Source: Haliotis rubra (Eukaryota). Taken from it: a stretch of DNA of 64,000 nucleotides. Numbering within the stretch: the stretch's first letter is position 1; each line of letters begins with the position of its first letter. The DNA is taken from assembly GCF_003918875.1 (NCBI RefSeq), contig NW_025766967.1, forward strand, positions 434,001-498,000, in the 5' to 3' direction. Under the pieces are notes generated by a model, which saw nothing but the letters and a program-made list of their open reading frames with translations, did not search any database and had not been told where the DNA came from. Positions 9,011 to 60,230 of this stretch are shown piece by piece. Made by a program: the position numbers and the translations under genes.

Positions 9011-11410
9011 AATGGATCTGATAAGTAAAATGAACCACAACAAACTTTTTAAAAAACAACAACAAACAAACCCAGAAATCTCCTGTAAATGTTGAGTTAG
9101 TTTTACGTAAACATGTGTTAGTCGGGTCAGTAAATATCCACATAATTGTCGATTCTGTTGTGCTCTCCCTGTGATGTCTGCACTCCCCACAAACAACCCA
9201 AACCGCCCCTTTTGGCACGCAAGCAACCTATCATCGTGGGGTCAAATCTGGGTTCGATCTCGTCAGTTTTCAAGGTTTGTCAGTACCATACCAGTGTTCC
9301 TCAGTTTCACCCAATTCTATACGTATGCCACTTGCTTCACTTCGGGCTTTCCTCCCCCGTTAAACCGTGATATAACTGACATATTGTTCCAAAGGTGTCC
9401 TCCCATTACGCAGACAGCCAGTTCGCAGACACCTTAAACAAACAACATTTACGGTTCAGTGAACAGATTATCTACTACCTGTTACCTACACAATATAATG
9501 GAATAGTCCAAATAAAAACGCAGGAACAACATGAAGCTATATTATTTATTTTGAAAGATGGACGAAAAGACAGTAACATGAATTTTTATTGCTGCAATAT
9601 AAAAACAGTTTATTTTCATAAACATTTCGGTTTAACCTTCTAGTCTAACGGGAGTCGGCATCATCATATTGAAAACATTAGCTTAGCTATTAGAAATCGC
9701 GACACTGTTGTATCATATAAATCAAATAAAGACAAATGTGAACCTAAATATTATTCATATGGAATAAATACGTTGTATGTTTTGCACACAATATTAAGAT
9801 ATATGACGAGTGCACTTAATTACGATTTATTCAGAATAAATATTTAAAATATGACACATCATGTCAATGTGGCCATGGATGTGAGAATGTTTTTCATTAC
9901 TTCCTTGAATGTCCATTGTACACTACTCAAAGACATAAACTGTTACAATCATTAGAAACGATTGTTAAAATTAGAACACTGATTTGTATTAATCGTATCT
10001 TACATGGCAATGCAGGTGTCTCATTTACTGCAAATCAGAATGTTTTCAAATATGTGCATGTCTATATCACTCCAACAAAACGTTTTCTCAGTTAACTTCT
10101 GTTGTACATATGCTATTATTGGGAGGGGACCTTTCTAACAATAAACACAATCAAACCTCTCAGTGACAAACCTGTTTTATATTCGATAGTAATTAATAGT
10201 AAAAACAATTTTGAGAAGAGAAATCATTTAGCATTTAAACACAACAAATTTCTATTTACCTACAATCAAACTTCTCAATAACAAACCTGTTTCAGGCTCA
10301 CCCTGCTCTACTCACTAGACAGTGGACTGTTCCATTATACCCATAGGTGTAACCCTAATTAACCTTCTAGTTCAGTGTCTGTCAATTGGGTGTCTGTGTG
10401 TCTGTCAAATGGGAGATAACCGTTCCAAAAGACGTTAAACGGAACCCACTCACTCACTCACGCTTGACTTGAAGCAGTGAACATGAAAGTGAACATGTGA
10501 CCATCGAACTTTTACATTATGCATCGTTGTTGATATATATCAGTATATTAAACTTTAAGATTGTCTGGTCCAGATTCAATTTTATTTACAGCTGGAACAT
10601 TGTTGCGTTAAACGACAATCAGGCAAATTAAATTCATAAGTAAAGACAACTTGTATACACTCCTCTTCAGTCATTTCACAGTCACTTGTTCAGACATACT
10701 TTGGTTTGTTTGTGTTGCATTGGGTTTTTCGTCGGTCTTCTCGTCACATGTCTCCTGTTTTCGCTGTACCTACTCGTAACACATTAACATTACTAGCGTG
10801 GAACCTCACGTATAATCTGCATTGTACACCACAATGGGAAGTAAAAATGCGTAAATGTACGGGCACTCACGCGGGTGTTCTTAAAATGGAAAACAAGATC
10901 ACTACCAAGAAGTTCTCTTTTAAGAAGAACGAGGTCACTTAACCTGAACAAGGTCGATCTACCTCTGTGTATGTATAGTGTGCGGTACCAGTATATCATC
11001 TACAGTCCTCCTATTAACATGGAAAACACTTGCATCCCTAAACAAGGGCGACGCCACAGAGTTGTGACGACAATATGTATACTGACTCTTGTCATCTCAG
11101 CAGCGCTGAACATATCGATGATTGTTCTTGTTTTGTTGCATACATTTTCTCGCAGTCACCCTGTAATCACAGCCGATACAAAGCGCATTGGGCAGGGATC
11201 TTTGTGCATTCCGTGTGAAACGCATAGGAGAGAGAAACGTACCTTGGCTCACTCCGAGTATGCCGATGTGGTACTTCTTCAGGGACGTCGGATATGCTGT
11301 CTGAGACATGCTAAGGGTCTAACACATCTTGTGTAACTTGTCAGTAAAGTGGTACATGTAACTAAAGACATATTTCGTATTAATAAACAGCCAACTATCA
11401 GCTGAATTTA

Positions 11411-11655
11411 GTGATTGAGTTTAGTTTTATACCACACTCAGCAATATTCCAGATATATGGCGGCGGTCAGTAAATAATCAAGTCTTGACCAGACAATCCA
11501 GTGATCAACAGCACGAGCATCGATCTGTTGAATTGGAAACCGATGACATGTGTCAACCAAGTTGGCGAGCCTGACCACACGATCCCGTTAGACGCCTCTT
11601 ACGACAAGCATGGGTTACTGAAGATCAATATTCTAACCCGGACCTTCACGGGTCA
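11411..11655 (-). mobile_element. SINE family B
   Basis: Full ~245 bp copy; shares the 3' tail (gctggaatattgct..aaaactaaactca) with family A. Confidence 0.85.
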
Positions 11656-12142
11656 ATGGAAGTTAATAAGAAAGGCTTAACATGTTGGATTTTGACAAAT
11701 CTGAGTATGACTCGTCCTAATACCCGTTGAACGGTTTTTGGAGTATGTGATAGTTTCCGAGCTTAAAGTGTGAGGAATGCACAAGTGATTCAGGTATCAG
11801 TTTTTGAAATTTACTACTGGAAAATCAAATGAGCCTGACAATAAAGCGGACAACTCCAGACCTGTAATTACGGTGAACTGGAGAATCGAGTAAATTGCTG
11901 TGAAAACCATTCTGGTATTTCAGTCTCTAACAAGAGCATTGTCTGATACATTGTCATCAAGTGTATATTTGATTAATATTTAATAATTAATTATGTTTGC
12001 AAACTGACCATCCAAATTGTCCACTTGTGTTAAAAATAGGTTTTTATTCTGTAAATAGAATAGTCGTGTATAATAAAAGACCAAAGTGATGCATTATTCT
12101 TTATCACACTGGTGAATCCCACCATTATAAAGATATAAAGAT

Positions 12143-12340
12143 ACTGGATCCCACTCAAGAATCGATGGATCCCACTCTGAAAAATCGTGGATCCCACTCA
12201 AGATCATTCGATCACTCCTCTGACACACCTCTTCACAGAGAATTGGCACCTAATCTGTGATATCGTGGATCCCACTCAAGATCATTCGATCACTCCTCTG
12301 ACAAAACTCTTCACAGAGAATTGGCACCGACTCTATGATA
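12143..12340. repeat. Local tandem duplication (~78 bp x2 plus partial copies)
   Basis: atcgtggatcccactcaagatcattcgatcactcctctgaca..ctcttcacagagaattggcacc occurs at 12184 and 12262. Confidence 0.85.
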
Positions 12341-14047
12341 CGTACGCTATTAACATAGCCAGAGTGTTGCTATAATACGACCAAAACGTACATTATATTC
12401 TCTGCAATGAACCTTGGCAATCTATTTTTAAATATATAGCTTAACCCAAATGAGTCCATGCTCTTGATTATTCTAATACCGTTTAAATGTTCTGATACAT
12501 GTGTGTTTATTGCAGATGTCATGCTACTTCTTTGAACACAGAGAACTGAACTCTGACTCGGGCAGGGCACGTCACATTCATCAAGGCGACGTCAAAGCTT
12601 CAGCCCACGTGTTCCTTAATCAGGTCACATTTAAGGGTACGTCTTGCAATGGTTATTTTAAGCATTATCTAGTTCTGTACAAATCGTGTTTCACTGGAGC
12701 AAAACACAAGTTTTGATATTGTTTGTTTTCATGTCGGTTAATACACAATTGCATGGAGTCCCTCTCTGTTGAACACATGTTTGTAAACGAAGCACTGAAA
12801 AATCAGTGATGGTACCAGGTGTTCGCATAAAGGGTAGCATCCGCTTGTGAAATATTTGAAATATTTATCCCAAATATTAGAACTCGAAAATAAGGACAAA
12901 TATGTTTATCGTTATTCTAATAATGATTGTCATCATCAATTACAAATAAAATGCGTCGTATGTTTGCAGGAACCCATCTTGTGTGGAGCACAAAGCCCGG
13001 TTATGGAAGTGCCCATGTCACTGGTGCCATAATATTGGAAGACAACTCATTATTTATCCCAAAAGACGGTTTATTTTTCGTATATTCCTCTCTGACGTTT
13101 ATTGTACGTCGTGGTGACATCACAAAGATGCATGTGACATATTCGTTATTACGTCACAATCCATGTTATTCTCCTGTGCCAGACATTTTACTACTAACAA
13201 ACGTTAGTCTTCTTCATGGAGCGGGGCTGTTCACGGCAATAACTTTAGAGGAAAGCTTTTCCTTGAGGCGGTGAGATGTTCTGTCCGTCTTCGTGTTAAA
13301 CTATTCTTATGTTTACCCGTTCGGTTTTCTTCATCAAACTATTTTGATGTTCGCCAGCTTTAGCACAAAACCTTAGAACGAAACTCTGTTCAAATATTTA
13401 CAGTAATTATATATCATGTAAAACAATAAAAATAAAAGAAATGTTAGAATACATCCAGCTGTTGATTTATGTGACAAATAGAAAAAGACTGTTTGTTTTG
13501 GGTGGGTGAGGGTTGGGGTGTGTGGGTGGGAGGGGTGGGGTTTTTGTGGGTGGGAATGGTGGTGGTAGTGTGGTGGTTGTGAAACGGGGTTTAAGGACGT
13601 GTGACACGTGTACTGATGTGCGGATTCAGACAACAAACTTCCATGTGCAAGCTGTTGCTGGTGCTGCCGTTATTGCAGACCATGCTGTCCCCGTTTTGCG
13701 AACACCTGGTGTCACTACACAATTTCAGCGATCCGATCATGTCATTTTCACTGATGTTTTGCCTTTTACCTGCAGTGGAATCTGTTTTAACGTATAATCG
13801 ACGATTCGTATTAAACAGTAATACATGTTACTGTCAGCATCGATATTCCATTAATATAATATTAATAACATACCAATATTTATCACACACAAAATTACAT
13901 TTCAACATTTTACAGTGATTAATCTATAATAACGGATGGAAGGTGTAATACTGTATAGGGCTGTTGCAGCACATTAAGGCCGTAAGACTCGTCTGAAGCT
14001 GCTTCAAAATGTATTTCAGCTTTAGGAAATTACGGTAATAACGAAGT

Positions 14048-14889: not shown

Positions 14890-15048
14890 CTGACTGACTG
14901 AGTTTGGTTTTACGCCGCTTTTAGCAATATTCCAGCATCATCACGGCGGGGGACACCGGAAATGGGCTTCACACAATGTACCCATGTGGGGATTCGGGTC
15001 TTCGGCGTGACGAGCCAACGCTTTAACCACTAGGCTACCCCACCGCTC
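14890..15048 (-). mobile_element. SINE family A with 14-bp TSD
   Basis: ccattcacacctga at 14876-14889 and 15049-15062. Confidence 0.9.
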
Positions 15049-16754
15049 CCATTCACACCTGATACTGAAATTGAATGAACAAACATTTCTGACTAAATAC
15101 GGCATTATGAATTAGAAAATCAACGTTAATGATCACTTAAAAAAGAAAACATCATTCTTACATTTGTATCCTTTGATCTATTTCAACAATGAGTAAACCA
15201 AGTAATGTAAGATGAGGAGAATAATGTAAGATGAGGAGAATAATGTAAGATGAAAAAGTATTGATAACATTGATAACACAAGACAAAAAAGGAAATTCCG
15301 GTGCATGTTGTTCTTTAAGATATGACGAATACTGCATCTTCGCTATATATTCATGATCCTTTTTGTTGCTGCCTCAAACAGTTGGTTCACCCGTGCGTGT
15401 ACGACATAAATCATGTACTATTTATTCAGCTGTTGCAGGATAGTAACACTGCAGAGGTAACATATGGCAAAACTCTATTTAAGGCAGTACACGTAAATAA
15501 GCGACATTATTTAGCAACTGAAATACACATATGGCCTCGTAAGTGATGGGATATGGACAGGATACCATAGAACAAAGTATGTCACTGCATAAACACAAAT
15601 GTAAAATACAATATATGTTATTCAACTGCCACTTTTGTCTATGTTAGTACACGTGAGTATGTATAAATGAATGTTAAACACAGTTACATGTAAACAATAT
15701 TCAACTTTGTCACACTTATAACATATGTTATATTTGGGATTACACTTTCTTAGTAAACCATAACATATGTGTACATTTGACCACTTTCTAAATGGCATTG
15801 TGTATTCATTTGTCACACTTGTATGGGGTAATAAGGTTGGTAAACCAACAATTATTAACATTACTTAAGGCACTGGTCAATTTTCGGGGTGGACGGAATA
15901 AATATACGTTCAAGTATCGAATACAATGCTTCTTTGTAGAACGTTTGACCCTATGGTATTACATGGATATAACACATTGGCCACCAATAAAATCATCAAT
16001 CACAAACATATTCAAGTCGAGAGTATTCAGCGCCCTCTTTATCCGGTATAATCAAGGCAGATCACTCCTGTTCAGGATCTGGTAGAGAAATGTCTATATG
16101 ATACGTCTTACTCAGAGGCACCACAAACAAGACACCCAGGAGCCACATCTCCTCCGAAAAGATCACACATTACAAATTAAGAACACAACATTAACAATGA
16201 AAACAGAATCAACCATGAAAGCTGACAGAACAATGTACACCAAAAGGTGATCGTTCTATTCTAATAAGAAGATTATAAAAAAAATCCACAAACTTGATAC
16301 AAGTTTCTTCCATGTGTCTACCATGCACGGTCGTCAGCACAACATCGGTGTAATTAAACCAATTACAGATTATGAGTCGTCGGTACACATAAATAAATAC
16401 ATTGAAGTAGCTGCTGACTGTTTCAATGGGAATACTAAGACACGAAATAGTCAAATCTGAAGGACTTTCATTACGAATTATAGAACTGGGCTGAAGCAGT
16501 TACAAGGAGACTTTGAAGTCAAAGGAGCTAATTTTAATTATACAAATTTTGATTTCATTGGTTAAATTTCTGTAAACTTTATATTCACCGCACATTATAG
16601 CAGTTTTATACAACAATGGCATTTTGGAGGTTTGAATCTTCAGATCAACCTTACCAGTAGTGGTTTTGTACACCAGATCGAAGTGCTTGGGCGATCTTCC
16701 TACCAAATAGACGCCAAAGAAATTAGAAGGAGGAAATGGGTAAGAATACGCTCT

Positions 16755-18339
16755 TTATGTCCCTACGAAATACAAGCCAAAGAAATTGGATGGTGGAAAC
16801 CGGTAGATATACGACATGTTGCTGACGTGTACAAACACGTGATCATCTTGTCTCAGCCTGACTGTAGCCGACAGGAAGCTTGTGACGAATCTTTCACTCA
16901 CTTCCGGCATCGTCTTCTTGGCCAAAAGGATTACAGTGCTGCCAAGGTTTGGCAGGTGTGTGTTGGTCCTTCTGATGGTGTGGATGATGTTTTCAGGACG
17001 TCGCCGTCGTTGGTGGGTCTTGAACGTGAAGAAGGAGTAGATGCAGTATAGGCCTGACTTTGTTACCCGCAGTGTGTTGTTGTCAGAGTAGATGTCGTTG
17101 CTTCTGTAGGCGGAACCGTAACCATATTCCTCGGTCCATTCCAAAGAAGGTTCTGGATGGAATTAAAATTGGTTAACGTCCCGTTAACTAAACTTCACAC
17201 ATGTGTGACGTCAATGCATTTGGTGTTCTTAGTGTACTATCAGTACAGGGAAGGAACCAAAAATGCCAATTGAATTTAATGTTCAAAGTCTAATACAAAA
17301 CTAAATTTACTTCTATGTTAGCTAACATATGTACAACATACCCTGGTTATAATGCCATCGTTTGTCCAGGAGGAAATATGGCATTATATCCAGGGTGACA
17401 ATATAACCAGGTAGGACCTCAGCAGGATGGTTGGTGGTACGACATTACCACCTGCATCATTGTGTCCTGCAATGATCCTTAACGGACTGGATAATCCCAG
17501 CGTCTTGGGGCTGCAGGTGACTTCTTGTTGTAGGTGTTCACCAGTGCCACTAATTAGAACAGTCCAACATCCACTGTCCAGCGACCTCCTAATCCCTTAT
17601 CCAAACATTCAGATATGGGGGAAAGAGAGGTTAAACCGGCAGGAAGTGTATAGTCACATGTGTTGAATACTTAAATCTTTAATGAGTTTGTTCAATGAAT
17701 CTGGGTCATATCAATTAACCAATTAAGTTATGTATACTACACGCAGACAGTGTAATTGGCATAATAACCAGGGAAAATTTCTTTTGTTCCAAAAACAATT
17801 GGCATTGTATCCAGGGTGGCATTATAACCAGGGTGCACTGTAGTGGCTTGAATACTGGACACCATGATCGTCACCACTTCTCGCCAACTAAACGTGCATA
17901 CTCATATTTATCACGATGAGGTTCGGTGTTACAGAGAAATGGCCGTGTTTCACTACAAGAAACGTTTATTCTGATCTCGGTTTCCAGGAATTTACCGTTT
18001 CATACAGTGCCTTCTTGAACGAATATTCGTGCGGGTTCAAGGCCCAAACCAGATCAAACTCCCGACTGGTAATATTACGTGTGTTCTTATGTATCTACGC
18101 GAGGCAATATATTACAAAAATACGTCATCCCTGTCATACACAAATAATACAGATCAACGCATCCTGAAATTATTACCCCACGTTATTACTCTGAACTCTG
18201 TATACGTACTTGCTGCAGTCAATGCGTCACTTTCAAGATACACATGGGCTCCAGTGTAAATACTTTGAATGACTGTGGAGTCATTGTTGTTGGTGTCTTG
18301 GTTCCTGGTCCTGGTTGTATCAAAGAATCGGTCAGCGAA
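16755..18339 (-). CDS. Duplicate exons 2 and 3 of TNF-2 (18339-18210, 17152-16755); no dedicated exon 1
   Basis: Open frames and intact splice sites; complete TNF homology domain; three amino-acid differences from the copy at 21411-19852. Confidence 0.75.
17334..17840. mobile_element. TA-flanked MITE (Tc1/mariner/pogo type) in TNF intron; second copy 20431-20909
   Basis: Imperfect TIR CAGTGCACCCTGGTTATAATGCCA, TA at both ends. Confidence 0.75.
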
Positions 18340-18632
18340 CTGAAATGTTATAAAAAAAAGAACGTTCGTACCAATTTGATCTGTTTCCTGTTGTTGGTGC
18401 TTTGGTTCCTGTTGTCATGGAAATAGTCTGTTGAATTATTATTTTATTTGACTTGTGTGGAAAGATCACATTCATATTCGAACTGTAATATTGACTCTTC
18501 TAAATACAGGTCATCTGCTGATCATCATAAACTGAAATAAAATACCTCATAAATTTACTGAAAGCTGTTTCAGACATCCTAAAGCAAAACAAAGTACTCA
18601 AAGGTTGTTTTTTTCAGGCATCAGCATAAGTA

Positions 18633-18780
18633 GGTGGGTATGTTTTACATATTTAGCAATATTCCAGCAATATGACGGCGGGCAACACCAGAAACGGGCT
18701 TCACGCATTGTGGTTAATCGAATGCGGGTCTACGGCGTGACGAGCCAACGCTGTAACCCTTAGCCTACCCCACCATCCAG
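18633..18780 (-). mobile_element. SINE family A, diverged; duplicated at 21706-21854
   Basis: TSD tcagcataagta on both sides. Confidence 0.8.
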
Positions 18781-19851
18781 TCAGCATAAGTAAAGTTCGT
18801 GGCACTCCTGAATTGACCAGACTGGAATAATCGAACAGTTATCTATTAGTCATGCTAGCCAACTTCGATGTTACAAAATCCAATAGCAGGCTACCTATGT
18901 TTTCCAGCCCTCCTACATTCTACTTACAGATCTCCTAAGACCTACTCCCCTTATGAAATCAAATCACCAATAAAACCAGTTGGGTTTAAAACATTATTAA
19001 CATTACTTAAGGCACTGGTCAATTTTCGGGGTGGACGGAATAAATATACGTTCAAGTATCGAATACAATGCTTCTTTGTAGAACGTTTGACCCTATGGTA
19101 TTACATGGATATAACACATTGGCCACCAATAAAAATCATCAATCACAAACATATTCAAGTCGAGAGTATTCAGCGCCCTCTTTATCCGGTATAATCAAGG
19201 CAGATCACTCCTGTTCAGGATCTGGTAGAGAAATGTCTATATGATACGTCTTACTCAGAGGCACCACAAACAAGACACCCAGGAGCCACATCTCCTCCGA
19301 AAAGATCACACATTACAAATTAAGAACACAACATTAACAATGAAAACAGAATCAACCATGAAAGCGAAGATTATAAAAATCCACAAACTTGATACAAGTT
19401 TCTTCCATGTGTCTACCATGCACGGTCGTCAGCACAACATCGGTGTAATTAAACCAATTACAGATTATGAGTCGTCGGTACACATAAATAAATACATTGA
19501 AGTAGCTGCTGACTGTTTCAATGGGGAATACTAAGACACGAAATAGTCAAATCTGAAGGACTTTCATTACGAATTATAGAACTGGGCTGAAGCAGTTACA
19601 AGGAGACTTTGAAGTCAAAGGAGCTAATTTTAATTATACAAATTTTGATTTCATTGGTTAAATTTCTGTAAACTTTATATTCACCGCACATTATAGCAGT
19701 TTTATACAACAATGGCATTTTGGAGGTTTGAATCTTCAGATCAACCTTACCAGTAGTGGTTTTGTACACCAGATCGAAGTGCTTTGGGCGATCTTCCTAC
19801 CAAATAGACGCCAAAGAAATTAGAAGGAGGAAATGGGTAAGAATACGCTCT

Positions 19852-22800
19852 TTATGTCCCTACGAAATACAAGCCAAAGAAATTGGATGGTGGAAACCGG
19901 TAGATATACGACATGTTGCTGACGTGTACAAACACGTGATCATCTTGTCTCAGCCTGACTGTAGCCGACAGGAAGCTTGTGACGAATCTTTCACTCACTT
20001 CCGGCATCGTCTTCTTGGCCAAAAGGATTACAGTGCTGCCAAGGTTTGGCAGGTGTGTGTTGGTCCTTCTGATGGTGTGGATGATGTTTTCAGGACGTCG
20101 CCGTCGTTGGTGGGTCTTGAACGTGAAGAAGGAGTAGATGCAGTATAGGCCTGACTTTGTTACCCGCAGTGTGTTGTTGTCAGAGTAGATGTCGCTGCTT
20201 CTGTAGGCGGAACCGTAACCATATTCCTCGGTCCATTCCAAAGAAGGTTCTGGGTGAAATTAAAATTTGTTAACGTCCCGTTAACTAAACTTCACACATG
20301 TGTGACGTCAATGCAGTTGGTGTTCTTAGTGTACTATCAGTACAGGGAAGGAACCAAACATGCCAATTGAATTTGATGTTCAAAGTCTAATACAAAACTA
20401 AATTTACTTCTATGTTAGCTAACATATGTACAGCATACCCTGGTTATAATGCCATCGTTTGTCCAGGAGGAAATATGGCATTATATCCAGGGTGACAATA
20501 TAACCAAATAGGACCTCAACAGGGTGGTTGGTGTTACGGCATTTCCACCTGCATCATTGTGTCCTGCAATGATCCTTAACGGACTGGATAATCCCAGCGT
20601 CTTGGGGCTGCAGGTGACTTCTTGTTGTAGGTGTTCACTAGTGCCACAAATTATAACATAACAGACCATAGTCCAACATCCACAGTCCAGTGACCTCCTA
20701 ATCCCTTATCCAAACATTCAGATGTCGGGGAAAGTGAGGTTAAACCGGCAGGAAGTGTATAGTCACATGTGTTGAATACTTAAATCTTTAATGAGTTTGC
20801 TCAATCAATCTGGGTCATATCAATTAACCAATTAAGGTATGTTCCAAAAACAATTGGCATTGTATCCAGGGTGGCATTATAACCAGGGCATTATAACCAG
20901 GGTGCACTGTAGTGGCTTGAATAATGGACACCATGATCGTCACCACTTCTCGTCAAACTAAACGTGCATACTCATATTTATCACGATAAGGTTCGGTGTT
21001 ACAGAGAAATGGCTGTGTTTCACTACAAGAAACGTTTATTGTGACCTCGGTTTCCAGGAATATACCGTTTCATACAGTCCGTTCTTGAACGAATATTCGT
21101 GCTGCGGGTTCAAACCCCAAACCAGATCAAATTCCCGACTGGTAAAATTACGTGTGTTCTTATGTATCTACGCGAGGCAATACATACAAAACTAAGTCAT
21201 CCCAGGCATACAAACATAATGCAGATCAACGCATCCTGAAATTATTACCCCACGTTATTACTCTGAACTCTGTATACGTACTTGCTGCAGTCAATGCGGC
21301 ACTTTCAAGATACACATGGGCTCCAGTGTAAATACTTTGTACGACTGTGGAGTCATTGTTGTTGGTGTCTTGGTTCCTGGTCCGGGTTGTATCAAAGAAT
21401 CGGTCAGCGAACTGAAATGTTATAAGAAAAAGAACGTTCGTATCAATTTGATCTGTTTCCTGTTGTTGGTGCCTTGGTTCCTGTTGTCATGGAAATAGTT
21501 AGTTGAATTATAATTTTATTTGACTTGTGTGGAAAGATCACATTCATATTCGAACTGTAATATTGACTCTTCTAAATACAGGTCATCTGCTGATCATCAT
21601 AAACTGAAATAAAATACCTCATAAATTTACTGAAAGCTGTTTCAGACATCCTAAAGCAAAACAAAGTACTCAAAGGTTTATTTTTTTCAGGCATCAGCAT
21701 AAGTAGGTGGGTATGTTTTTACATATTTAGCAATATTCCAGCAATATGACGGCGGGCAACACCAGAAACGGGCTTCACGCATTGTGGTTAATCGAATGCG
21801 GGTCTACGGCGTGACGAGCCAACGCTGTAACCCTTAGCCTACCCCACCATCCAGTCAGCATAAGTAAAGTTCGTGGCACTCCTGAATTGACCAGACTGGA
21901 ATAATCGAACAGTTATCTATTAGTCATGCTAGCCAACTTCGATGTTACAAAAATCCAATAGCAGGCTACCTATGTTTTCCAGCCCTCCTACATTCCTACT
22001 TACAGATCTCCTAAGACCTACTCCCCTTATGAAATCAAATCACCAATAAAACCAGTTGGGTTTAAAACATTATTACTACTCATTGTTATGTTGATTTATG
22101 CTGCTCTGTCAATGTGGAAAACACGTAATTATGAAAAACATAATTGTCATAATTAGTCATAAGACTGCAGTCACGCCTCCGCGTGACTCAACTCGTGACA
22201 GTCTCCCATTGTTAACCTGTCCCATAAACCAGATGCTATGTAATCGTACATCCGAGTTAAATACACTTTAAACAGACTTACGATTCGCTTGGGATATCAC
22301 CTATAAATAATATATACAGCTCAGCATGACATCTAAGTGCTACACCACTATGTGTTTACTGTCTGCTCGGCCCTAATTTAAGAACCAACGAATCCATTGT
22401 CAGTGAAACATTAAAACACACAAGTCTCGAAACCAGATCGTAAATCATGTTATCTGCAAGTCTGTACTGGTAATCTTGTAGGGTAACAGGTTGGGACTAT
22501 CCCACAACCATGGTACATCCTAGTATCGCCGAATTATGGTCTTTATAGACAGAATCATTATTACCAATATTGCTCATATCGGCACCAATAATATCACCTA
22601 AATCGTTATCATGATATAAACCTATGTTTTCTAACACATTTATTAAGCATGAAGCAATTAAGACTCAAAAGAGAGTAAAAATAAACTCACAATCGCCAAT
22701 AGCCGCTGAAGCCCTTCAGCATTTTCCAGACAGCAGACGGAAGTTGAATCAGTCACGTGATGCACGGTTATACCGTGCAAGTCGGTCCTCCTGTGATTGC

Positions 22801-23155: not shown

Positions 23156-23226
23156 AGTTCTCAGCCGAAGTCCCGTCCGTTGTGGTAACACGTAAACAAA
23201 CTAACTCTGTCGCTGAGCGTCATAGT

Positions 23227-24851: not shown

Positions 24852-25400
24852 CCCTTTGTATAATTATGCGACTCGTTTACATTCAATATATATTGAACAT
24901 CTGGTGATCTGTTTAGATGTACATCTACACCAGCTACAACTATTACATACATCAATCACTGTACATACACGTATATATAACACGTGTTAGTGCATCACAT
25001 GTAGAAACATGCACTTCGGTATTCAGAGAGTTAGCTCCCTTTAACAGGCTGTTGAGTCTCAGCAACCACTTGATCGTTAATTTGATGTTTGCCGGTCTGA
25101 CTCACACATGACAGTCAGATGATGTCACGTTGTTGGATGGGAAAACCGGAGTCAAAAGTCAAACACGCTCACACTGGGTACATCGGCGTAAAAAGTGTAA
25201 AAGGGTTATTTGTGATGCATACACACAATCTAACACTGTGAAATCACATGAGTGCAGGTTGCATGTAAATACTCTGTCTTGTATTATCCCAAGCTCCGGC
25301 TTGCCTTTCTCGGGATTGAGGTCTGGGTCAGGAACGCTATCTCTAACACATTTATCTATGTCTCACTCGAGCCCAAGAGAGATGTCGTTTGTTATGTCAA

Positions 25401-25638
25401 GGCGAGGTGAGGTGAAATTGGGTTTAACCTCGTGCTTGAGAATATTTCGCCCATATGACGACGTGCATGCGTGTGTATGTGTATGTGCGGCTGCTTGTAC
25501 CAGCCCAGACTTAAGCTGGTTTTATAGTGCTAGCCCACTGAGATACCACGCCGCAGTGAAGCATGAATACCCCACTCAGACACATTATACTGACTCCAAG
25601 CCGACCAGTCATTGTTGTACGCATTTATGCCGAGCGCT
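25401..25638 (-). mobile_element. SINE family C, 5'-truncated
   Basis: Matches 23927-24160. Confidence 0.85.
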
Positions 25639-26663
25639 TGTTATTACAAAGAGTTATATAATGTCAATTAGCTTGATCACAGACGGCAAATGCGGAGGGG
25701 AATATGTGGTAGCTATGTGTAACAGGAATTATATTTTCTACCAACCATTCGTTTAGACGGAAACCCTCATTAGTATTATTTGCAAACACAAACAAATATA
25801 CAATACATGTCAAACTACCTTTCAGTTCCTTTACATCTGACGGTTTCAACAATAACACCTCTAAAGCGCCAACAATGGGTACTGACAATAACAAACAATG
25901 CTTCCGTGTGCATTGGGATCACTCACTCACAAAAACTCTCAGCTAGAAAACTATAATGCATCATAGTGTCTGTATACATAATGAACAATAAAGAATAGCG
26001 TCATGAATAATTTGGGGATGTTTTTATTTGAAGTTGTCTTCCTCCGGATCCACAACTTCTTTATTACAATTCTTTCGACCATAAGCAAACAAGCGATCAA
26101 GCAAGCTGCGTGATGGTATGTACACTGAAGCGTCGCATGTATTTTAATAAAGAACTTGTATTTCCCTTGTTGATCACACCAACTTCTAAATGCCACTCAA
26201 AGAAATTTCAAGTAATCAAACAAATGGTAAACAACGTGAAAGGACATGCCATAGAGGCAAGGTCACATGTATACAGACATTGACAGTCAATATTTCTTCC
26301 TTCTGACAATTGTAAATATATGTGTCGGTGCCATTGACACTCAATGCGTATAATCATTATGTTTATATAATCGCAGACAAACAGAATTTGTCCGGTTGTT
26401 GATGCGTATAGACTGATGTACCAATCAACAGCAAGAGTCTTCCGGAAACTCCCGCCATTGGTTTTGTCCTTGGCTTCATCTGTCAAAGATTCTTAACTTA
26501 AGTTAGCTATGACATATTGCCAATGACCTACTCCTATAATTTCCATCTGTTTTGCCATTTACTCAGTGGAATCTAGTTCGACAGGTCACCGAGGCAGATT
26601 ACTCTCTGGCAGTGCAATTTGCTTTTGTGTGAAGCCAGTTACACCATTTTATGGTGACACAAT

Positions 26664-42860: not shown

Positions 42861-42874
42861 TCTTCAACAATTTG

Positions 42875-43103: not shown

Positions 43104-43397
43104 CAATGACAGGAAAATGTGGTTAGTTCAGAAATGCGTCGTGTGATGAAATATTCATGGAAGTATGAACAGAAACTGCTAATCATATGTATATTGTTCA
43201 CGATGGCCCAGTCGGTACTGTTGGTTGCTGTACAGTGTTATTTCCTTTAGCTGTAGTATATCTGATCGTGGGTTCGAATCTCAGAAACTGGCCATCTGAT
43301 TCCGAACCCTGGTCTTCTAGTACAATACATGTGCTTATGGGTTTTATAATTGTGGTTAATGTCGGAGACCTGTACCGGTATGGGCTTGCTCATCGAG

Positions 43398-44925
43398 TAA
43401 CTCACTCGCCTGCCTACCAACTCACACAATCATCCACTCACTCACTCGCCTGTCTACCAACTCACACAATCATAGACTCACCGAGTCACTCACTCGCCTG
43501 CCTACCAACTCACACAACCATTCACTCAACCAGTCACTCACTCACTCGCCTGCCTACCAACTCACACAACTATCCACTCAACAAGTCACACACTCGCCTG
43601 CCTACCAACTCACACAACCATTCACTCACCGAGTCACTCACTCGTCTGCCTACCAACTCACACAACCATTCACTCAACCAGTCACTCACTCGCCTGCCTA
43701 CCAACTCACACAATCATAGACTCACCGAGTCACTCACTCACCTGCCTACCAACTCACACAACCATCCACTCAACCAGTCACTCACTCGCCTGACTACCAA
43801 CTCACAAAACCATTCACTCAACCAGTCACTCACTCGCCTGACTACCAACTCACACAACCATTCACTCAACCAGTCACTCCCTCGCCTGACTACCAACTCA
43901 CACAACCATTCACTCAACCAGTCACTGACTCGCTTGCCTACCAACTGATACAATCATAGACTCACCGATTCACTCACTCGCCTGCCTACCAACTCACACA
44001 ACCATTCACTCAACAAGCCACTCACTCAATCACCTGCCTACCAACTCACACAATCATAGACTCATCCAGTCACTCACTCGCCTGCCTACCAACTCACACA
44101 ACCATTCACTCAACCAGTCACTCACTCGTCTGCCTACCAACTCACACAATCATAGACTCACCGATTCACTCACTCGTCTGCCTACCAACTCACACAATCA
44201 TAGACTCACTGTGTCACTCACTCGTCTGCCTACCAACTCACACAATCATCCACTCAACTATTCACTCACTCACCTGCCTACCAACTCACACAATCATCCA
44301 CTCAACCAGTCACTCACTCCCCTGCTTACCAACTCACACATTCATAGACTCACAGAGTCACTCACTCACCTGCCTACCAACTCACACAATCATCCACTCA
44401 ACCAGTCACTCACTCACCTGCCTACTAAATCACACAATCATCCACTCAACCACTCACCGAATCACCTGCCTACCAACTCACACAATCATAGACTCAACTA
44501 TTGACTCACTCGTCTGCCTACCAACTCACACAATCATAGACTCACCGAGTCACTCACTCCTCTGCCTACCAACTCACACAATCATAGACTCACCGAGTCA
44601 CTCACTCGTCTGCCTACCAACTCACACAATCATGCACTCACCGAGTCACTCAAACACATGCCTACCAACTCACACAATCATAGTCTCACCGATTCACTCA
44701 CTCGTCTGCCTACCAACTCACACAATCATCCACTCACCGAGTCACTCAATCACCTGCCTACCCACTCAAACAACCATCAACTCACTCACTCCTTCCCTCG
44801 CCTACTCACTCATTCACTCAACTATCCACGAACCCACTCACTCTCTCATCCACCTGACCTCCCAACTGTTCACCCACTCATTCTCTCTTTCTCACTCACC
44901 CACCCAACGACCCACTCACTCACAT
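43398..44925. repeat. 48-bp minisatellite (~28 units) decaying into (CTCA)n-like sequence
   Basis: ctcactcgcctgcctaccaactcacacaaccattcactcaaccagtca repeated. Confidence 0.93.
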
Positions 44926-45564: not shown

Positions 45565-48500
45565 TTACATTTTTATAACACCAAAATAATTTGAAAATCT
45601 CCTTTTCTCAACTAAATCATAATAATTGTTCGACACCACCACATGGAGGCGATCTTGTTTGCGGAGCTTCACAATGGCGGACAGGAAGGACGTTTGCTGC
45701 GGAGTTACTGTCAACCGGAAGGACGTTTTAGACATGAGTATGGATTTCTCTCCGAGGCCAGGGAGGTTAGGGTTCTGTCGCCGTATCATGTGCAGGAAGG
45801 GTGTGTCTGAGGATGTTGGCAACGTGGTGAAGGTGATGTGTGAGTACACCAGGTACAGACCTGCTGCTGCCACGACGACTTTGTCCCCATCACATTCGAC
45901 GTTGGAACAGAAAGACGTATTGTAGGGGTCGCTCGTCGTCCATGTTGGCGGTGAATCTGTACAAACGAGTACAATATTAACAAAGCACAGTTCATGTACT
46001 GATGTATCACAACAATATTTATGTGTTATACAGAGAACCTGTAACTGTAATCACCTCAAATGATATAAACACTTAAAAAAGTAACGATATCCCATTTTCC
46101 ATATAATTTTTAATATATATATACTCACAGAAACGAATAAGGGAACACATGAAAGTACAAGTGTTCTTTTATTTATTTCCAGAATTTCACTCACTGTGTT
46201 ATTCATTCCTCGTGAAGAAACATGGACAAGAATAAAGGAACATTTGTACTTTCATGTGTTCCCGTATTCGTTTCCATGAATATATGTTTGACATTTTGTG
46301 AACACCAAACTCGGTAATACTCCATCAAAATGTCGGCGATCAGTATAGAACAGGTTGAACCAGACAGTCAAGGAAATTATCTGCATCAATCTACACAACT
46401 GTAATACAACTATATGCTTCCACCATGTGAACGAGCTGAAAAACAAAAGTACTGCCGGAAATAGAAAAAAAACTGTTTTTTCACATTTATATCTACATGT
46501 AGTTAATATGTGAAAGTGTGAAATATCTGTTAAACTAAGTTCGGCCTAACTACAGTCTCAGTGGGAGGGAGATAGGAAACGTAAAAGAAGGATTTTACTG
46601 AGGAGAGCTTAGTGCAGAAATGAGCAATGCAGTTTTTTTCTAAGTCCAATGCGACTTATTCAGAACAGACCATGGCTTTATACAAATTAGTGTGCGATGA
46701 TATTGTATTATAAAGGACACTTTTAAACGATCATTTTGAAATTAGACTTAGCTTCATTATAAACGATAGCAGACGTAAACAATAATAACTTTAATACTGA
46801 AATTATTAAGGATGTAGCTACCATGGCGTTTCACTATCAATATAAAAAGAAACAGGTAGGAGGGGTCGTCTCAAAAGCAAAACAAGACTTGGCGTTTGCG
46901 TGTCATTTTAAGCCCGAGTAGGCGTTTCTGCCACACAGTTACTCTGATTGAATGTATTTTGGACTGAATAGGGTGATTCTTCGATTCTAATGGAGGTACT
47001 TATGCCATGCAATACTCCACACAGCAAAGGGGCAATATTCAAAGCTCGCACATACAACACAACATTATAACCCCGGATAGCCCAAGCTGCCTGTTAGGAG
47101 CCAGAAGGTTATAGTCATATAACTTACCCCACCGGGTACCCATTTTCTGCTGGGTGAACAGAGGCAATTTTGAACAAACTCACTTGCCTAAGGTGAGACC
47201 ACGTGTATCACATGTGTTTCGTTGTGGGGCAGGACTGAAGTCCTAGAAACTCCCATGAGTCAAGCTGCCAAACACATGGCCAATAAGAAAGCCGGAATTT
47301 GTCTATGCGGCATAAAACACCATCCACCACCATGTCAGTGTTGTAATACGGAAGCAAATGTGCATGCATATGCAAATCATTACCTCTGTCTGGCACCAGA
47401 TATCGGTGAGCCCACGTCGACTCCCTGGGACGACTCCATATCTCTTCCCGCAACCCTTTAAGGAGGTCACCCGGCTCCCTGCCTAAAATGACAAAAGCCA
47501 TTGTTCGTTTATCGAAATTGTTCAGACAAATCGTTGTTTTGGTAGTACTACCTATACGTTTGTAACTGCTTCGTGTATTTGTTGTAAAATCATGGGAATT
47601 ATTATTTTGAATGAAATATAATTTATTCGTTTAGTGCCGTGAAGTTCTGTGTTAATTAAGCGAGTGAGTGAGTTTACTTTTACGCCACTTTTACGCCGCC
47701 GTGGGTGAGTGTTACATATAAAACAAAGATCCTTAAATACATGAATGAACGAGTGAATAAATGCACGCACCTGTGGACCTTCTGTAGTATTCGTCACTGA
47801 TTATCTGAAACGAAATAAAAACACATGAAGACCTCAAACGGCATGTCTTTAAAGGTTGATTTGGATTGGTTTGTTTGTTGTTAACGCTGCACTGTGTGCA
47901 ATTAATCGAGTCTGGACCGGACAATCCAGTGATCAACATTATGAGCATCGATCAACGCAATTGGGGTACGATGACATGTAAAACATCTAATCTCACTACT
48001 CTGCTCTGAGAAGTTAATTCAAACCCAGCGTATAATCTGAACATGGGAATAAACACACGATGTCTTTAGTTGTAGTCATTTCAGCTTTTTGTCTTTGTTA
48101 TATGGGGATTCGAACCTTGATTAACTCCTGCCACACCAGGGAACATGTCTCAGATACGCAAGTTCCTGTTCCTTGGGCTGCAGTGTTACTCGAGATNNNN
48201 NNNNNNNNNNNNNNNNNNNNNNNNNNNNNNNNNNNNNNNNNNNNNNNNNNNNNNNNNNNNNNNNNNNNNNNNNNNNNNNNNNNNNNNNNNNNNNNNNNNN
48301 NNNNNNNNNNNNNNNNNNNNNNNNNNNNNNNNNNNNNNNNNNNNNNNNNNNNNNNNNNNNNNNNNNNNNNNNNNNNNNNNNNNNNNNNNNNNNNNNNNNN
48401 NNNNNNNNNNNNNNNNNNNNNNNNNNNNNNNNNNNNNNNNNNNNNNNNNNNNNNNNNNNNNNNNNNNNNNNNNNNNNNNNNNNNNNNNNNNNNNNNNNNN

Positions 48501-49170
48501 NNNNNNNNNNNNNNNNNNNNNNNNNNNNNNACTACTATTGCAACTACAACAATTACTACTACTACTGCTACTACTACCACCACCAATGCTACTACTATCA
48601 CCAATGCTACTGTACTACAACTACTACTCCTACTGTTACTACCACAGCTACTACTACTACTGTAACTTCTGTAACTACTACGACTGTAACTATTACAACT
48701 AACTACTCCTACTACTACTACTACTACCATCACCAACGCTACTACAAGTACTACTTCTAAATGCACCGTCTATATTACTAGTATTTAAGTACCTTTTGGA
48801 ATAACGTTGTGACGTCATTCTTCTGTCTCTGACAACACAGCGCATGTCCCGATGGCAGTCTTATGACGTCATAAAGCGTATCCTTGGATTCGACCAGCGG
48901 ACCAAGTTGATCACAGGTGAGACATATTTGATCAGCAGCCGCCTGCTTTCGATTCGACAGAGCGGGTAAACCCTCAGTTCTGGGGTGATGTTCTCGCGGT
49001 TTCATAAACTCATGGACAGCCACGACGACAATCAGCACAACATTGGCTGTCAGCGATAATCCGATAATCGCATACAACAGCACCCCCGGACGACGTCGGC
49101 CTTGATGGGGCGGTGGAGTTGGTGACGTTGCTGGCTCAATGGATAGGAAGGTGGACTCGGGTTCGGACAT
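45565..49170 (-). CDS. TNF-superfamily ligand TNF-5, 300 aa; exons 49170-48793, 47804-47771, 47482-47384, 45956-45565
   Basis: TM VLLYAIIGLSLTANVVLIVVVAV, CLTC..CC, 34-nt micro-exon IISDEYYRRST, WAHRYL, PTW, VVAAAGLYLVYSHITF, TSFLSAIVKLRKQDRLHV, SNYFGVIKM. Phases 0,1,1. Intron 1 contains an assembly gap. Confidence 0.88.
48197..48530. other. Assembly gap (N run)
   Basis: Ns. Confidence 0.99.
48531..48757. repeat. (ACT)n degenerate trinucleotide microsatellite
   Basis: Direct reading. Confidence 0.92.
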
Positions 49171-50254: not shown

Positions 50255-50748
50255 AAATATATATTCTTTGTTCCTCCAAAGGAGAGTTACAAGAGTAATA
50301 ATAATGACAAATTTACATTATAAAAGCATGCAATGTTATGATTACTTGTAGCTTTAGAAACGGTGATTATAATATTCCTTTTCGATAACAGTTACTCTTT
50401 GGAATTGATGTAAGCCTTTGATTGCTACTTCAGAAAATGTGAGTTCAATGTCCGGATCTGGCACAGGAGGATGGCAGGACAGGAGACATCATACCAATTC
50501 CACATCAGGCTCCTGACCTCCACATAACACCTGTCCACTATGTTGCACCAGAGATTGTCTCTCTGTTCTTCTGTCTCAGGACACATGCACACAGTGTGCA
50601 CAAGTAGGTCTGTGTAACTGTCCCTGCACAGTCTGCACACACCCTGGACCTGGACATTTCCTGGCCTCCACATCTGGATCACAAAGGCTGCAGCTTGCTT
50701 TATACCAGGAACTCTCTTCGCTGTTACCCACGCTTCGGTGATGGTGGT

Positions 50749-50784
<36 letters not shown>

Positions 50785-51740
50785 GGGGGGGAATTACTGG
50801 ATGAATCAGTGGGAAGTGTCTTAGGTCTGGGTCAGTCTCTATTCGTCTTTTCCATATATCGAGTTCTCTCCCTTTGATAGCATCCTTCACAATTCTCTTC
50901 CAGGTCGATCTACTGGGGAATGTTCCATGGCTGCTGAAGGTGTTAAGGAAAGCCCCAAGGTTGCACCTCTCTGCAATCCGTTTGATGTCTGGAACAAAGC
51001 CGAGTGAGGTTTCTGTACACATGTACTTAGACAGAGCCAGTCTTGTTGAAAAGATGCGCCTGGGGACTAAGTCTGTTTTGCCTTTACATAGGTTTCCAAG
51101 GAACAGTAGCTTTCGTTTGTCTATTTCAGACTCCAGTGATGTCCAGCCGAGCAGAGCGTTACAGATATCTGTTCTCGTTGACCGAGGTAGGCCCTGTGCT
51201 ATCTTGAGGGCAGCTCTCTGGGAACGTTCCGATGCCAACATTTGTGCTTTACTCAGGTTGTAACACAGTTCACACCCAAAAAGGGATCTTTGGGACACAG
51301 ACAGATTTAATGATTTTAGAGCTGACTAAAGGGTTTAATCCTCTGATATGTACTCCTGATTTAAGCAGTGACATTGTTGTTGATCGCATCTTCGAGCATA
51401 CATCGATGGTTCTGTTCAAAGAGTTGTATTCTGCTGAAAGGGTTATCCCAACGTGTTCTATTTCCCTGGTGATTGGGATTCCTTGACCGTATAACTTTAT
51501 GTCCAGGTTAGAGGAGCTGACTGGTCCAAAGGTTAGAACTCTGCTTTTTGCTGGAGAAAATGTGAATCTCCACTGTCCACTGTATGCTTCGCACATAGAT
51601 ACCATGTCTTGTAGATGGGATCTGACTAGTGATATCAAGGTTGTATCGTCTGCCTGGGTTGGAGCTGTTACACTGATGTCCATTATGATTGATCCTTTCC
51701 CACTCTTTCTCAGAAGTTCATCTGATATACTTCAATTGAA
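50255..51740 (-). mobile_element. 5'-truncated LINE (RT C-terminal half plus CCHC zinc knuckle; RTE-X-like by inference)
   Basis: PTQADDTTLI, WRFTFSPAKS, HVGI, LFGCEL, CRLC..HTVCMC; 3' end tttggaggaacaaagaatatatat; frameshifts and an internal (CA)n insertion. Confidence 0.85.
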
Positions 51741-51745
51741 TGTAA

Positions 51746-56725: not shown

Positions 56726-59682
56726 TTATAGTTTTCTTACACCGAAAAATGTACGCATGGATTGTTTGTGAACTGACAAGACATCAGAAACTTTGACGGC
56801 GACTCGGTCATTCTTGCGCATGTCCAAGATGGCTGACAGGAAGCTGGTTTGATATTTCTCATGTGCGGAGTAGCTGTTGCTGTTAACCAGAAGAGTTACC
56901 TCCCCTAGGTTCGGTTGTTTCGGATGTTCACGGACAATCTGGTGCAAGAATACTTTGTCTTTATTTGTGTTCGTCTGCCGCCTGTATGTCACGTGAGAAT
57001 ATACGTGATATCGACCTTTTGACGGTATATGAATATGGCCATTTTGATATTTAACACCAGATATGTAGGCGAAGCCGGTCCGTCCACGGTCATACCAAGG
57101 CAGAGTGGTACCTGGAGACCAAAGGTCGTCATAGATCAATATGTATTAATTTACTGATACATGAGTCAAAATGCATCTAATACGCCTGATGGATTCTGTA
57201 TCGCTGGTTAATCGAGAAATATATACTAGGCGTATGGTGCTCCACAGGATGAAAATAACAGCAAATACCAAAACAAAATATTACCTTTCGCAGCACTCCC
57301 TAACAAACATACAAAGCAACTAGTAAAAAAATAAAAATAAATGAAAACCATACACCAAGCAAAAAATAAATCATTATGAAATAAAGTATAGAAACGTATA
57401 ATATACGTGTGGTCATGTTTACAGATTGCTAATGACCCGAGTTTGGAGTGCCCCAAGCCTTCCTGGTTTACCCTTGTTTAGGATTCAGTTTGTACAGCCA
57501 GAATACCTGGAAGATTTCGTGACGCAATGAACTTTACCCGCACGTGTCAATCAGTATGCAACAAGGAAGAGTCAAACACGATCATGGTAACAAAGACACT
57601 GAAGTCGTGAAAAAGGACCTCTATTTTTAGCAACACTTGATGTCTATACATTTGATTTTGTGATCTTTGAACTGGTAAAATATTTTCTTTTATGTATGGA
57701 TCGTATTTAAAGATAATCAACCTACGTCTGTAGCCCCGTCATATGTCTTTGTGTAAAATCATGTCATGTTCTAGTACTGACACAACTCACCCTACATTCT
57801 GAACGGTCTATACTCCTAACTGTCTATACTCCTAACGGTACATTCTCCTAACTGGCTATACTCCTAACGGTACATTGTCCTATCTGTCTATACTCCTAAC
57901 GGTACATTGTCCTAACTGTCTATACTCCTAACGGTACATTGTCCTATCTGTCTATACTCCTAACGGTACATTGTCCTCACTGTCTATACTCCTAACGGTA
58001 CATTGTCCTATCTGCCTATACTCCTAACGGTGCATTGTCCTAACTGTCTATACTCTTAACGGTACATTGTCCTAACTGTCTATACTCCTAACGACACATA
58101 CTCCTATCTGTCTACACTCCTAACGGTACATTGTCCTAACGGTCTATACTCCTAACGGTGCATTGTCCTAACGGTATATACTCCTAACGACACAAACTCC
58201 TTACGGTCTATACTCCTAACGGTACATACTCATAACGGTCTACACTCCTAACGGTACATTGTCCTAACGGTCTACACTCCTAACGGTGCATTGTCCTAAC
58301 GGTCTATACTCCTAACGTTGCATTGTCCTAACGGTACATAATCATAACGGTCTATACACCTAACGGCCTACACGCCTAGCGGTCTATACTCTAACGACCG
58401 CTACTGCTAACGGCACATACTCTTAACGGTACATATTCACAATTACAAAAGTTATCACAATGTAACAGTGTACGAATCACAACTATGACAGCTGTATTTA
58501 ATGCATCGCCATTTCTTCCTTGTTTCATTTTAAGTGAGGTGAGGTGAAATTGGGTTTAACGTCGTACTTGAGAATATTTCGCTCATATGACGACGTGCAT
58601 GCGTGTGTATATCTGGCTGCTTGTACTAACCCAGAATTAAGCTGGTTTTATAGTGCTAGCTCACTGAGATACCATGTCGCAGTTAAACATGAATACCCCA
58701 CTCAGACACATTATACTGACTCCGAGCCGACCAGTCCTTGTTTTACCCATCACTGCCGAGCGCCAGACAGGGACCAACAAGTACCATATGTTAACGTCTT
58801 TTGGTATGACGCGGCCGGAGATCGAACCCGCGACCTTCTGCTCTCCGGGCGGACGCTCAAACCAGGGCGGTCTCATTTTAGGGCCATCATCAAAGATGGT
58901 TGCATATTTTTGCTTAACAGTTCAAATGTTTACAATACACACTTTACTGGCCATAACTTCCGTCGTTATTCATAGTAATTATGTATATGGTAACGGACCG
59001 TTTCTTGGCGCCGGATCCAGATACAGATGTGCTCCAGTTGTTCCCTTCATCCACGAGGATGTAACCCTGGATGTAACAGGTGCATCCTCTGTAACATACA
59101 GGAATTACAATTAATCAAGGTCCGTGATCACACCTAAACCTAACCCCTGATTCATACTGTCAGTGTTATTATATTATTGTAACTCCCATATTTAACACTG
59201 ACTTAGGACGGTCGTAACGCTAAAATCGCTTTGTCCTGTGTTTCTCAATAAGATTATTGAAATCCATCTTCTCAAATGTGTCATTTGACAATAATGCTAC
59301 ACGTATCAATTTTTATTAAAATAAATTAGTTTTTTAACTTCAAGAGTTGCCGAAATTGATGAAAAGAAACAGCGTACAAGAAATGGTAAAAATCGTTTGC
59401 ATTTTTACATTGCTATATCATACATAGATAACAAATGTTACGATATTGACGCCAGAGAATATTATTGATTACCTTTTCCCTTGTATATTGCCCTCGCCAT
59501 CTGCATAAACAGAGAACAAGCTTGGATATTTTTCGATATACTTGAATACCACATATATATACTAAGTCTTGTTTTGTGAATATGCATGATTGAAATAAAT
59601 TATGCATTTTCATAACACCTCAAATAATGCTACAATGCATGGCAATACATTTTTGTGAGTGTATATATGCATATATACATGC

Positions 59683-59726
<44 letters not shown>

Positions 59727-60230
59727 GTGCGCGCGTGTGCATGTATGAGTGTGTTCATGTGTGTGTTTATGTTTGTGCGTGTAAATCCTGCCCAGCACAA
59801 TACGACCAATTTAAATGTTTGCAGGTTTGCCACAAACACACAAAGGCAGTTCAATTGATCAGTCGCAAAAAAAGCACAGGAAAACATAGTTTCCAACATA
59901 AACGCACACCTGTTGAAATGTTGGAGAAAGCTCATCCATTTCTTTCAGGCAACAGAACGTATCTTTCTCTACTCTCCCCACACTGTAGAGCGTGTCGTTG
60001 GATTCGATCCTGGGCCCAAGATAATCGCAAACAAAACACACAGCGCCGGTTTCAGCAACAGGGTTGAGTAGAGGAACATCTGTATCCTTCTTCAACACTA
60101 CGAAGATTACCAGTGTCACAACAGTTACATTGACAACAAGGGATGCTACCACGCTGATACGGAGAAATATGGGTCCACACACGGGCACATCAGCTCTGTT
60201 GGATTTTATGAACTCCGTGGATTCCGACAT
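56726..60230 (-). CDS. TNF-superfamily ligand TNF-6, 274 aa; exons 60230-59910, 59500-59473, 59088-58999, 57111-56726
   Basis: TM ISVVASLVVNVTVVTLVIFVVL, CFVC..CC, 28-nt micro-exon MARAIYKGK, GAHLYL, LPW, GVKYQNGHIHIPSKGRYHVYSHVTY, TSFLSAILDMRKNDRVAV, TFFGVRKL. Phases 0,1,1. The exon 3 donor (gtccgt) is weak. Confidence 0.9.
57800..58432. repeat. 32-bp minisatellite built from two related 16-bp subunits, in TNF-6 intron 3
   Basis: ctatactcctaacggt + acattgtcctaactgt repeated. Confidence 0.92.
58534..58872 (-). mobile_element. SINE family C, near full length
   Basis: tRNA-like head at the right end, (CACCT)n tail, tcatttta on both flanks. Confidence 0.88.
59655..59782. repeat. Compound (AT)n(GT)n microsatellite
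   Basis: Direct reading. Confidence 0.9.

Follow-up and report, generated by a model that had tools for sequence, protein, structure and literature searches.

A conserved cluster of type II TNF-superfamily ligand genes in abalone, with one pseudogene and one apparent recent internal duplication in Haliotis rubra

Domain searches, phylogenetic analyses and comparison with other abalone genomes identify a cluster of TNF-superfamily ligand genes in a 64,000-nucleotide stretch of the Haliotis rubra genome (QXJH01000299.1 of assembly GCA_003918875.1, bases 434001-498000, plus strand, hereafter the window), and this cluster shows both gene death, in the form of one pseudogene, and recent duplication. 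With a probability of roughly 90%, the region represents the greater part of a conserved abalone cluster of genes for type II membrane ligands of the TNF superfamily, in which two old subfamilies are mixed. The array contains five intact TNF genes, one pseudogene and one internal duplication. An original prediction, made from the letters of the window, had described six genes that combine a transmembrane segment with a TNF homology domain (THD) and had ended the array at 60230. The cluster is real, but it comprises six first exons and seven THD exons, which make up five intact genes, and it does not end there, as two further TNF genes follow at window-equivalent positions 64244-66288 and 69246-71369. 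The genes are referred to here as g1 and g3 to g9; one subfamily has three exons (g1, g3, g4, g5, g8 and g9), and the other has four, including a micro-exon (g6 and g7). RefSeq already lists the five intact genes, mostly as “uncharacterized”, and no publication describing the abalone locus was found in the literature searched.

All seven THD frames of the window pass the gathering score of PF00229 (23 bits) with 28.6-70.3 bits, as the original prediction had anticipated, and a precomputed PF00229 match is present on every annotated product. Tblastn searches with the THD frames and the first exons found no further TNF copies within the window. Each of the six first exons encodes one strongly hydrophobic segment (mean Kyte-Doolittle hydropathy of 2.5-2.8 over 19 residues), and this segment, one per protein, lies N-terminal to the THD, so that hydropathy and an AlphaFold model agree on type II membrane topology. 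The first exons also carry an invariant CxxC...CC stalk motif, whose four cysteines are invariant in 54 aligned lophotrochozoan TNFs, including those of bivalves, Gigantopelta and the brachiopod Lingula. Zinc-finger-like Pfam matches on first exons fell below threshold (E values of 0.011 and 0.35) and were not used. Two motifs noted earlier were also recovered: every minus-strand gene has [NH]xx[LQ]PxL[GQ], and TSFLSA is present in the intact genes other than g5 (four of five) and also in the duplicated cassette. Both occur in both subfamilies and, among the named matches, are confined to Haliotis proteins.

Evidence on the fold comes from one modelled gene product, P0162. Its AlphaFold model has a membrane helix at residues 56-85 (pLDDT 95), a small module of three strands that surrounds the four cysteines (pLDDT 62-81), then a helix, and then the THD (pLDDT 88-98). 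Foldseek comparison of this model with the PDB retrieves FasL, TNF, TL1A, LT-alpha and LIGHT with E values of 5e-12 to 2e-10, and the THD aligns with solved TNF ligands at a TM score, by target, of 0.83-0.89 and a sequence identity of 20-28%, in keeping with a jelly-roll fold. On our reading of the cluster, each gene encodes a short cytoplasmic tail, one membrane helix, the four-cysteine stalk (CxxC...CC), a helix and a C-terminal jelly-roll THD, which would, by analogy, trimerise and engage TNF receptors as the solved ligands do.

The five intact genes have complete models with GT..AG introns only and intact frames of 330, 320, 348, 300 and 274 amino acids (Table 1). First-exon donors are all in phase 0, and THD-exon acceptors, which sit 8 nt ahead of the Leu of the LxW motif, are all in phase 1, both at homologous positions; at least one middle exon is therefore needed. 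This phase difference rules out two-exon models in which the first exon joins straight to the THD exon, as had been proposed for the genes outside the four-exon pair, and these genes have three exons. The middle exons encode the first strand, “AH-x-Y/F-L”. The four-exon pair itself had been recognised correctly, with a micro-exon in each gene (34 nt in g6, 28 nt in g7). The expectation that standard predictors would fragment the locus was not borne out, as RefSeq holds all five intact genes whole, micro-exons included, in the same models as those derived here: the models of g6 and g7 equal RefSeq P0001 and P0005 residue for residue, and those of g3, g4 and g5 agree with the called genes in length and coordinates.

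In H. asinina, in H. rufescens or in both, each gene has a 1:1 orthologue, and both species conserve the order FMO > g9 > g8 > g7 ... g4 > g3 on one strand. In H. rubra, the minus strand keeps this ancestral row (FMO, g9, g8, g7, g6, g5, g4, g3), and in H. rufescens and in H. asinina the orthologues of g8 and g9 are neighbours. Given the 1:1 orthologues and the conserved order, the paralogues predate the split of these abalones. Orthologue pairs have ratios of nonsynonymous to synonymous divergence (dN/dS) of 0.30-0.39, showing purifying selection, and g5 is 82% identical to H. asinina P0017. The locus had been presented as lineage-specific; it is not private to H. rubra, and the associated proposal of a single clade is neither shown nor rejected by the data below. 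A second Haliotis cluster, with members of both clades described below, lies on a 193-kb contig of H. rubra and an 8.98-Mb contig of H. rufescens.

An exhaustive profile search returned 926 relatives at E <=0.001, of which the best are all from Haliotis, followed by bivalves. Word-index searches with a first-exon profile and with a mixed full-length/THD profile had returned 10 and 8 proteins and missed g3, g4, g5 and g8, for which the exhaustive search and a search with P0015 were required. In a maximum likelihood (ML) tree of 79 THDs, the mollusc sequences form a clade with support of 99/92. Within it, clade A unites g1, g3, g4, g5, g8 and g9 with their relatives (91/82; the named members are all from Haliotis), and clade B unites g6 and g7 with their Haliotis relatives (97/92) and is sister to a bivalve clade (87/81). 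Exon architecture provides a character independent of the tree. The four-exon layout with a micro-exon is found in Saccostrea (336/25/96/398 nt), Sinanodonta (474/28/114/383) and Ylistrum (468/37/114/416), while a Sinanodonta gene from another clade has three exons; since these bivalve relatives share the layout of g6 and g7, it predates the split of gastropods and bivalves.

The original prediction had expected all array genes to form one local clade, the product of tandem duplications in the lineage of abalones or of gastropods. The ML tree returns two clades instead, but constraining A and B together costs a log-likelihood difference of only 1.9, so that monophyly of all Haliotis family members is not rejected (approximately unbiased (AU) test, p 0.32), and the occurrence in both subfamilies of the two motifs otherwise absent from the named matches is also consistent with a single origin. 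The union of the four-exon genes with bivalve genes and the 25-37-nt micro-exon of the three bivalve relatives argue against it, and since orthologues of every gene occur in other Haliotis, no intact gene is a recent birth. On balance, we consider a single local clade rather unlikely.

Several points weigh against our reading of the cluster as a whole. The subfamily split rests on moderate support at the bivalve node, and the AU result leaves one clade admissible. Pairwise identity among the paralogues is only 25-47%, and at such divergence some of them may have diverged functionally. Expression was looked at for two genes only, via assembled contigs and not raw reads. Finally, that the proteins trimerise, bind receptors and act in immunity or cell death is inferred.

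The pseudogene, g1, is a plus-strand TNF copy with a disrupted frame, as had been suggested by the description of an inverted pseudogene. Although its splice sites are retained, its frame is broken by stops at 11334-11336 and at 13272-13274 and by an insertion of 5 bp near 13316-13320; an additional in-frame ATG lies at 10971, and the annotation has no gene call at its position. Its intact twin is g9 (LOC124282372, P0002), which is encoded on the minus strand outside the window (window-equivalent 69246-71369). The twins are sisters in the tree (99/86), with a dS of 0.054 between them, compared with 0.28 to H. asinina, and their dN/dS of 0.87 contrasts with the 0.30-0.39 of orthologue pairs. 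The similarity extends well beyond the genes: window positions 1-13810 are colinear, at 81-88% identity by blastn, with positions 622-12521 of the neighbouring sequence (L002), including an FMO-like gene (window 1-6501 against L002 622-6129, 81-88% identity). The right arm, made up of LOC124282372 and an FMO-like stretch, lies at 503-515 kb of the record; the neighbouring sequence fetched has no called gene in the FMO-like stretch upstream of LOC124282372. A simple inversion as the origin of g1 was dropped, as FMO-like sequence is also present in the 10 kb upstream of the twin, and this stretch runs colinearly with the left end of the window. Because FMO > g9 stand in one row on one strand in H. 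rufescens and H. asinina, the inverted copy of this FMO-g9 block beyond g3 is a gain of H. rubra, and the TNF gene carried by that copy is dead.

The fresh partial duplicate of the original prediction is present, but it comprises both exon 2 and the THD exon and sits inside an annotated gene, LOC124282364 (g3). Two tandem copies of 3.1 kb (15851-18992 and 18993-22075) are 94% identical including gaps, with 2.1% substitutions, and meet at an ATTATTA microhomology; each includes exons 2 and 3 and the greater part of the 3' untranslated region (UTR) of the gene. RefSeq models the duplicate as an alternative exon 2-3 cassette, and exon 1 plus the distal cassette translates exactly to P0162, RefSeq isoform X1. 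The products of the distal and proximal cassettes differ at three residues (V179I, A193D and S217N), and diagnostic sites between the copies are 21299/18227, 21340/18268, 21342/18270, 21384/18312 and 20195/17098. Neither the inverted FMO-TNF copy nor the cassette duplication was seen in the H. rufescens and H. asinina loci, of which only parts of the cluster were read.

We trace recent turnover in the H. rubra lineage to two events. One is an inverted segmental duplication that carries FMO and TNF genes over at least 13.8 kb, and its TNF copy in the window has become a pseudogene; the other, if genuine, is a tandem duplication of 3.1 kb that covers exons 2-3 of one gene. Tandem paralogues of differing age, a pseudogene and recent duplication, the elements of birth-and-death evolution, are all found at this locus, although of the recent duplicates the 3.1-kb one is putative.

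Transcription and splicing are shown for two genes, g3 and g4. Three small sequencing runs were read as RNA because their contigs are confined to exons. In all three, RNA contigs join 22691 to 21411 (GT..AG, minus strand) and end at 21282, thus covering exons 1-2 of g3, and this joint is missing from a DNA run; the contigs place the 5' end of g3 near 23174-23179. For g4, the ends of RNA contigs coincide exactly with the predicted acceptor 27061, and the 3' UTR extends to about 26021. As the RNA data are assembled contigs, they show the existence of spliced forms and not their level.

The same contigs bear on the tandem cassettes. They run 1428 nt past exon 2, which is 126-171 nt beyond the duplicated segment, and over 21870-22069, which is homologous to the proximal tail with 98.75% identity, RNA depth drops to zero; from these two features the contigs resemble the distal form. 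In exon 2 they show five differences from the proximal copy; four sites in this exon distinguish the copies from each other. Poly(A) signals at the predicted contig ends and the repeat boundaries did not discriminate which cassette the RNA uses.

Two explanations of the tandem copies have to be weighed, and neither is favoured strongly enough to be adopted. The duplication may be real, with two mutually exclusive exon 2-3 cassettes under one promoter that yield two ligands differing at the three residues given above. Either combination gives an intact 330-aa frame with GT..AG introns, RefSeq contains both forms, and the RNA contigs resemble the distal form in their tail, in the zero depth over the proximal homologue and in the exon 2 differences. 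However, no read set was seen with proximal-specific letters, a genome without the duplication would give an identical RNA pattern, and multi-mapping reads can create RefSeq isoforms of near-identical copies, and so we advance this explanation only tentatively. Alternatively, the duplication is not fixed, and the copies are either haplotypes set in tandem by the assembler or a polymorphism absent from the sampled animals. The divergence of the copies (2.1%) is indeed below the nearby allelic divergence of 4.5% (DNA run X5 against the reference, 25637-27269), summed DNA contig depth is 13-21 over the duplicated part and 15-24 over the flanks, and RNA contigs have the distal-type 3' UTR tail only, as from a single-copy gene. 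The clean junction with its 7-bp microhomology in contiguous sequence without N, and the modelling of both forms by RefSeq, speak for a genuine duplication, and contig depth measures copy number poorly; a non-fixed duplication is accordingly also a doubtful explanation. If there are two cassettes under a single promoter, they would represent an early stage in the making of a new ligand gene.

The larger duplication has left the g3-g8 block flanked by inverted repeats of at least 13.8 kb. Such repeats could flip the block or drive more rearrangement in populations of the blacklip abalone, although that the block is in fact flippable between them is, as a separate proposal, speculative.

Table 1. 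Features of the TNF ligand cluster in the window and its flank. Exons are given in order of transcription.
Feature	Position	Strand	Details
Left arm of inverted segmental duplication (FMO-like gene and g1)	1..13810	+	colinear with LOC124282372 block, opposite strand
g1, TNF pseudogene	10971..13368	+	exons 11019-11339 / 12516-12636 / 12970-13368; 85-90% amino acid identity to P0002
THD frame, g1	12927-13274	+	PF00229 28.6 bits
Tandem copy 1, distal cassette	15851..18992	-	exon 2' 18339-18210, exon 3' (THD) 17152-16755
THD frame, distal cassette	16755-17144	-	PF00229 above cut-off
Tandem copy 2, proximal cassette	18993-22075	-	exon 2 21411-21282, exon 3 20249-19852
g3, LOC124282364, proximal-cassette form, 330 aa	19852..23179	-	exons 23155-22691 / 21411-21282 / 20249-19852; called 330-aa gene
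THD frame, g3	19852-20241	-	PF00229 56.1 bits
g4, 320 aa	26021..28603	-	exons 28603-28157 / 27614-27497 / 27061-26664; called 320-aa gene, coordinates equal
THD frame, g4	26664-27092	-	PF00229 53.9 bits
g5, 348 aa		-	exons 37243-36713 / 35261-35144 / 34630-34233; called 348-aa gene starting 37243
THD frame, g5	34233-34679	-	PF00229 64.5 bits
g6, LOC124282367, 300 aa		-	exons 49170-48793 / 47804-47771 (34 nt) / 47482-47384 / 45956-45565; exact spliced match P0001
THD frame, g6	45565-45873	-	PF00229 41.6 bits, last exon alone
Assembly gap	48197-48530	.	inside g6 intron 1, between donor after 48793 and acceptor before 47804
g7, “TNF ligand superfamily member 15-like”, 274 aa		-	exons 60230-59910 / 59500-59473 (28 nt) / 59088-58999 / 57111-56726; exact spliced match P0005
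THD frame, g7	56726-57139	-	PF00229 70.3 bits
g8, intact three-exon TNF gene, 315 aa (= P0022)	L002 15082-17126, window-equivalent 64244-66288		outside window

The assembly gap in intron 1 of g6 begins 262 nt past the donor and ends 392 nt ahead of the next acceptor. As the g6 protein is reproduced exactly from four exons clear of the gap, its coding sequence is complete and only the length of the intron is uncertain; the orthologues P0004 and P0008, from H. asinina and H. rufescens, cross the exon 1/2 junction without an extra segment. RefSeq isoforms of a g6-like gene of H. rufescens differ in the exon for the first THD strand (“AHLYM”), a 32-residue exon that some of them skip (P0006, P0009 versus P0007), and the skipping product, if real, would be without part of the THD. 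About 570 nt upstream of the start codon of g7, a second gap (60802-61259) leaves the promoter and 5' UTR of this gene incomplete in the assembly.

Between g5 and g6 is a minisatellite (43438-44785) with a 48-bp unit in about 28 copies and 86% matches, which accounts for the strongly negative GC skew of the 42-46 kb region and for its long repetitive open reading frames (ORFs). The minus-strand ORF 51270-51683, between g6 and g7, has a weak match to RVT_1 (E 0.0036, below the cut-off) and, judging by this resemblance, is probably a fragment of a retroelement. Pfam searches of ORFs 25130-25756, 43187-43948 and 50576-51298 gave no match. A short interspersed element of about 125 nt occurs at 18652-18774, 21726-21848 and 14920-15044 and in at least six further places; it has very high depth in RNA and DNA runs, as do longer repeats at 23.9-25.7 kb and 58.5-58.9 kb.

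Abalone are farmed and are struck by viral and bacterial disease. The expansion of TNF ligands is a recognised trait of mollusc immunity, and an orthologue-resolved cluster of abalone ligands is a useful resource, as it yields exact gene models and identifies dead or doubtful copies. The stalk with four cysteines and the gene layout with a micro-exon are of old origin and are shared with bivalves and a brachiopod. The picture of the TNF family itself is unchanged by the abalone cluster.

Expanded TNF ligand repertoires are known from molluscs such as the Pacific oyster, one mollusc having as many as 27 Eiger-type paralogues, and an abalone was the source of the first TNF described in this phylum (10.1101/2024.07.27.603686). 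That ligand family includes AbTNF-alpha of disk abalone, reported as a pathogen-induced Haliotis TNF ligand (De Zoysa et al. 2009, as cited in 10.1101/2024.07.27.603686); its induction supports an immune role for the family. The abalone cluster resembles these expansions in the many divergent type II TNF ligand paralogues per lophotrochozoan genome, and the bivalve TNF proteins found here share with the abalone genes the THD, the four-cysteine stalk and the micro-exon layout. It differs from them in being a gastropod cluster whose gene order is kept across three Haliotis species. Human FasL, TNF, TL1A, LT-alpha and LIGHT (5l19, 4msv, 2zjc, 3k51, 1tnr and 4rsu) have the same type II layout, and the predicted abalone THD superposes on theirs, whereas the CxxC...CC module of the abalone stalk is absent from the vertebrate FasL matches (P0068, P0083); orthology of the abalone ligands to any single vertebrate member is not shown. 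In tunicates, a study of the TNF superfamily (PMC12843592) reports frequent lineage-specific duplication. Tunicates and abalone both have a dynamic non-vertebrate TNF family formed by repeated duplication, but they belong to different phyla, and in abalone most paralogues predate the radiation of the genus and two events only are recent.

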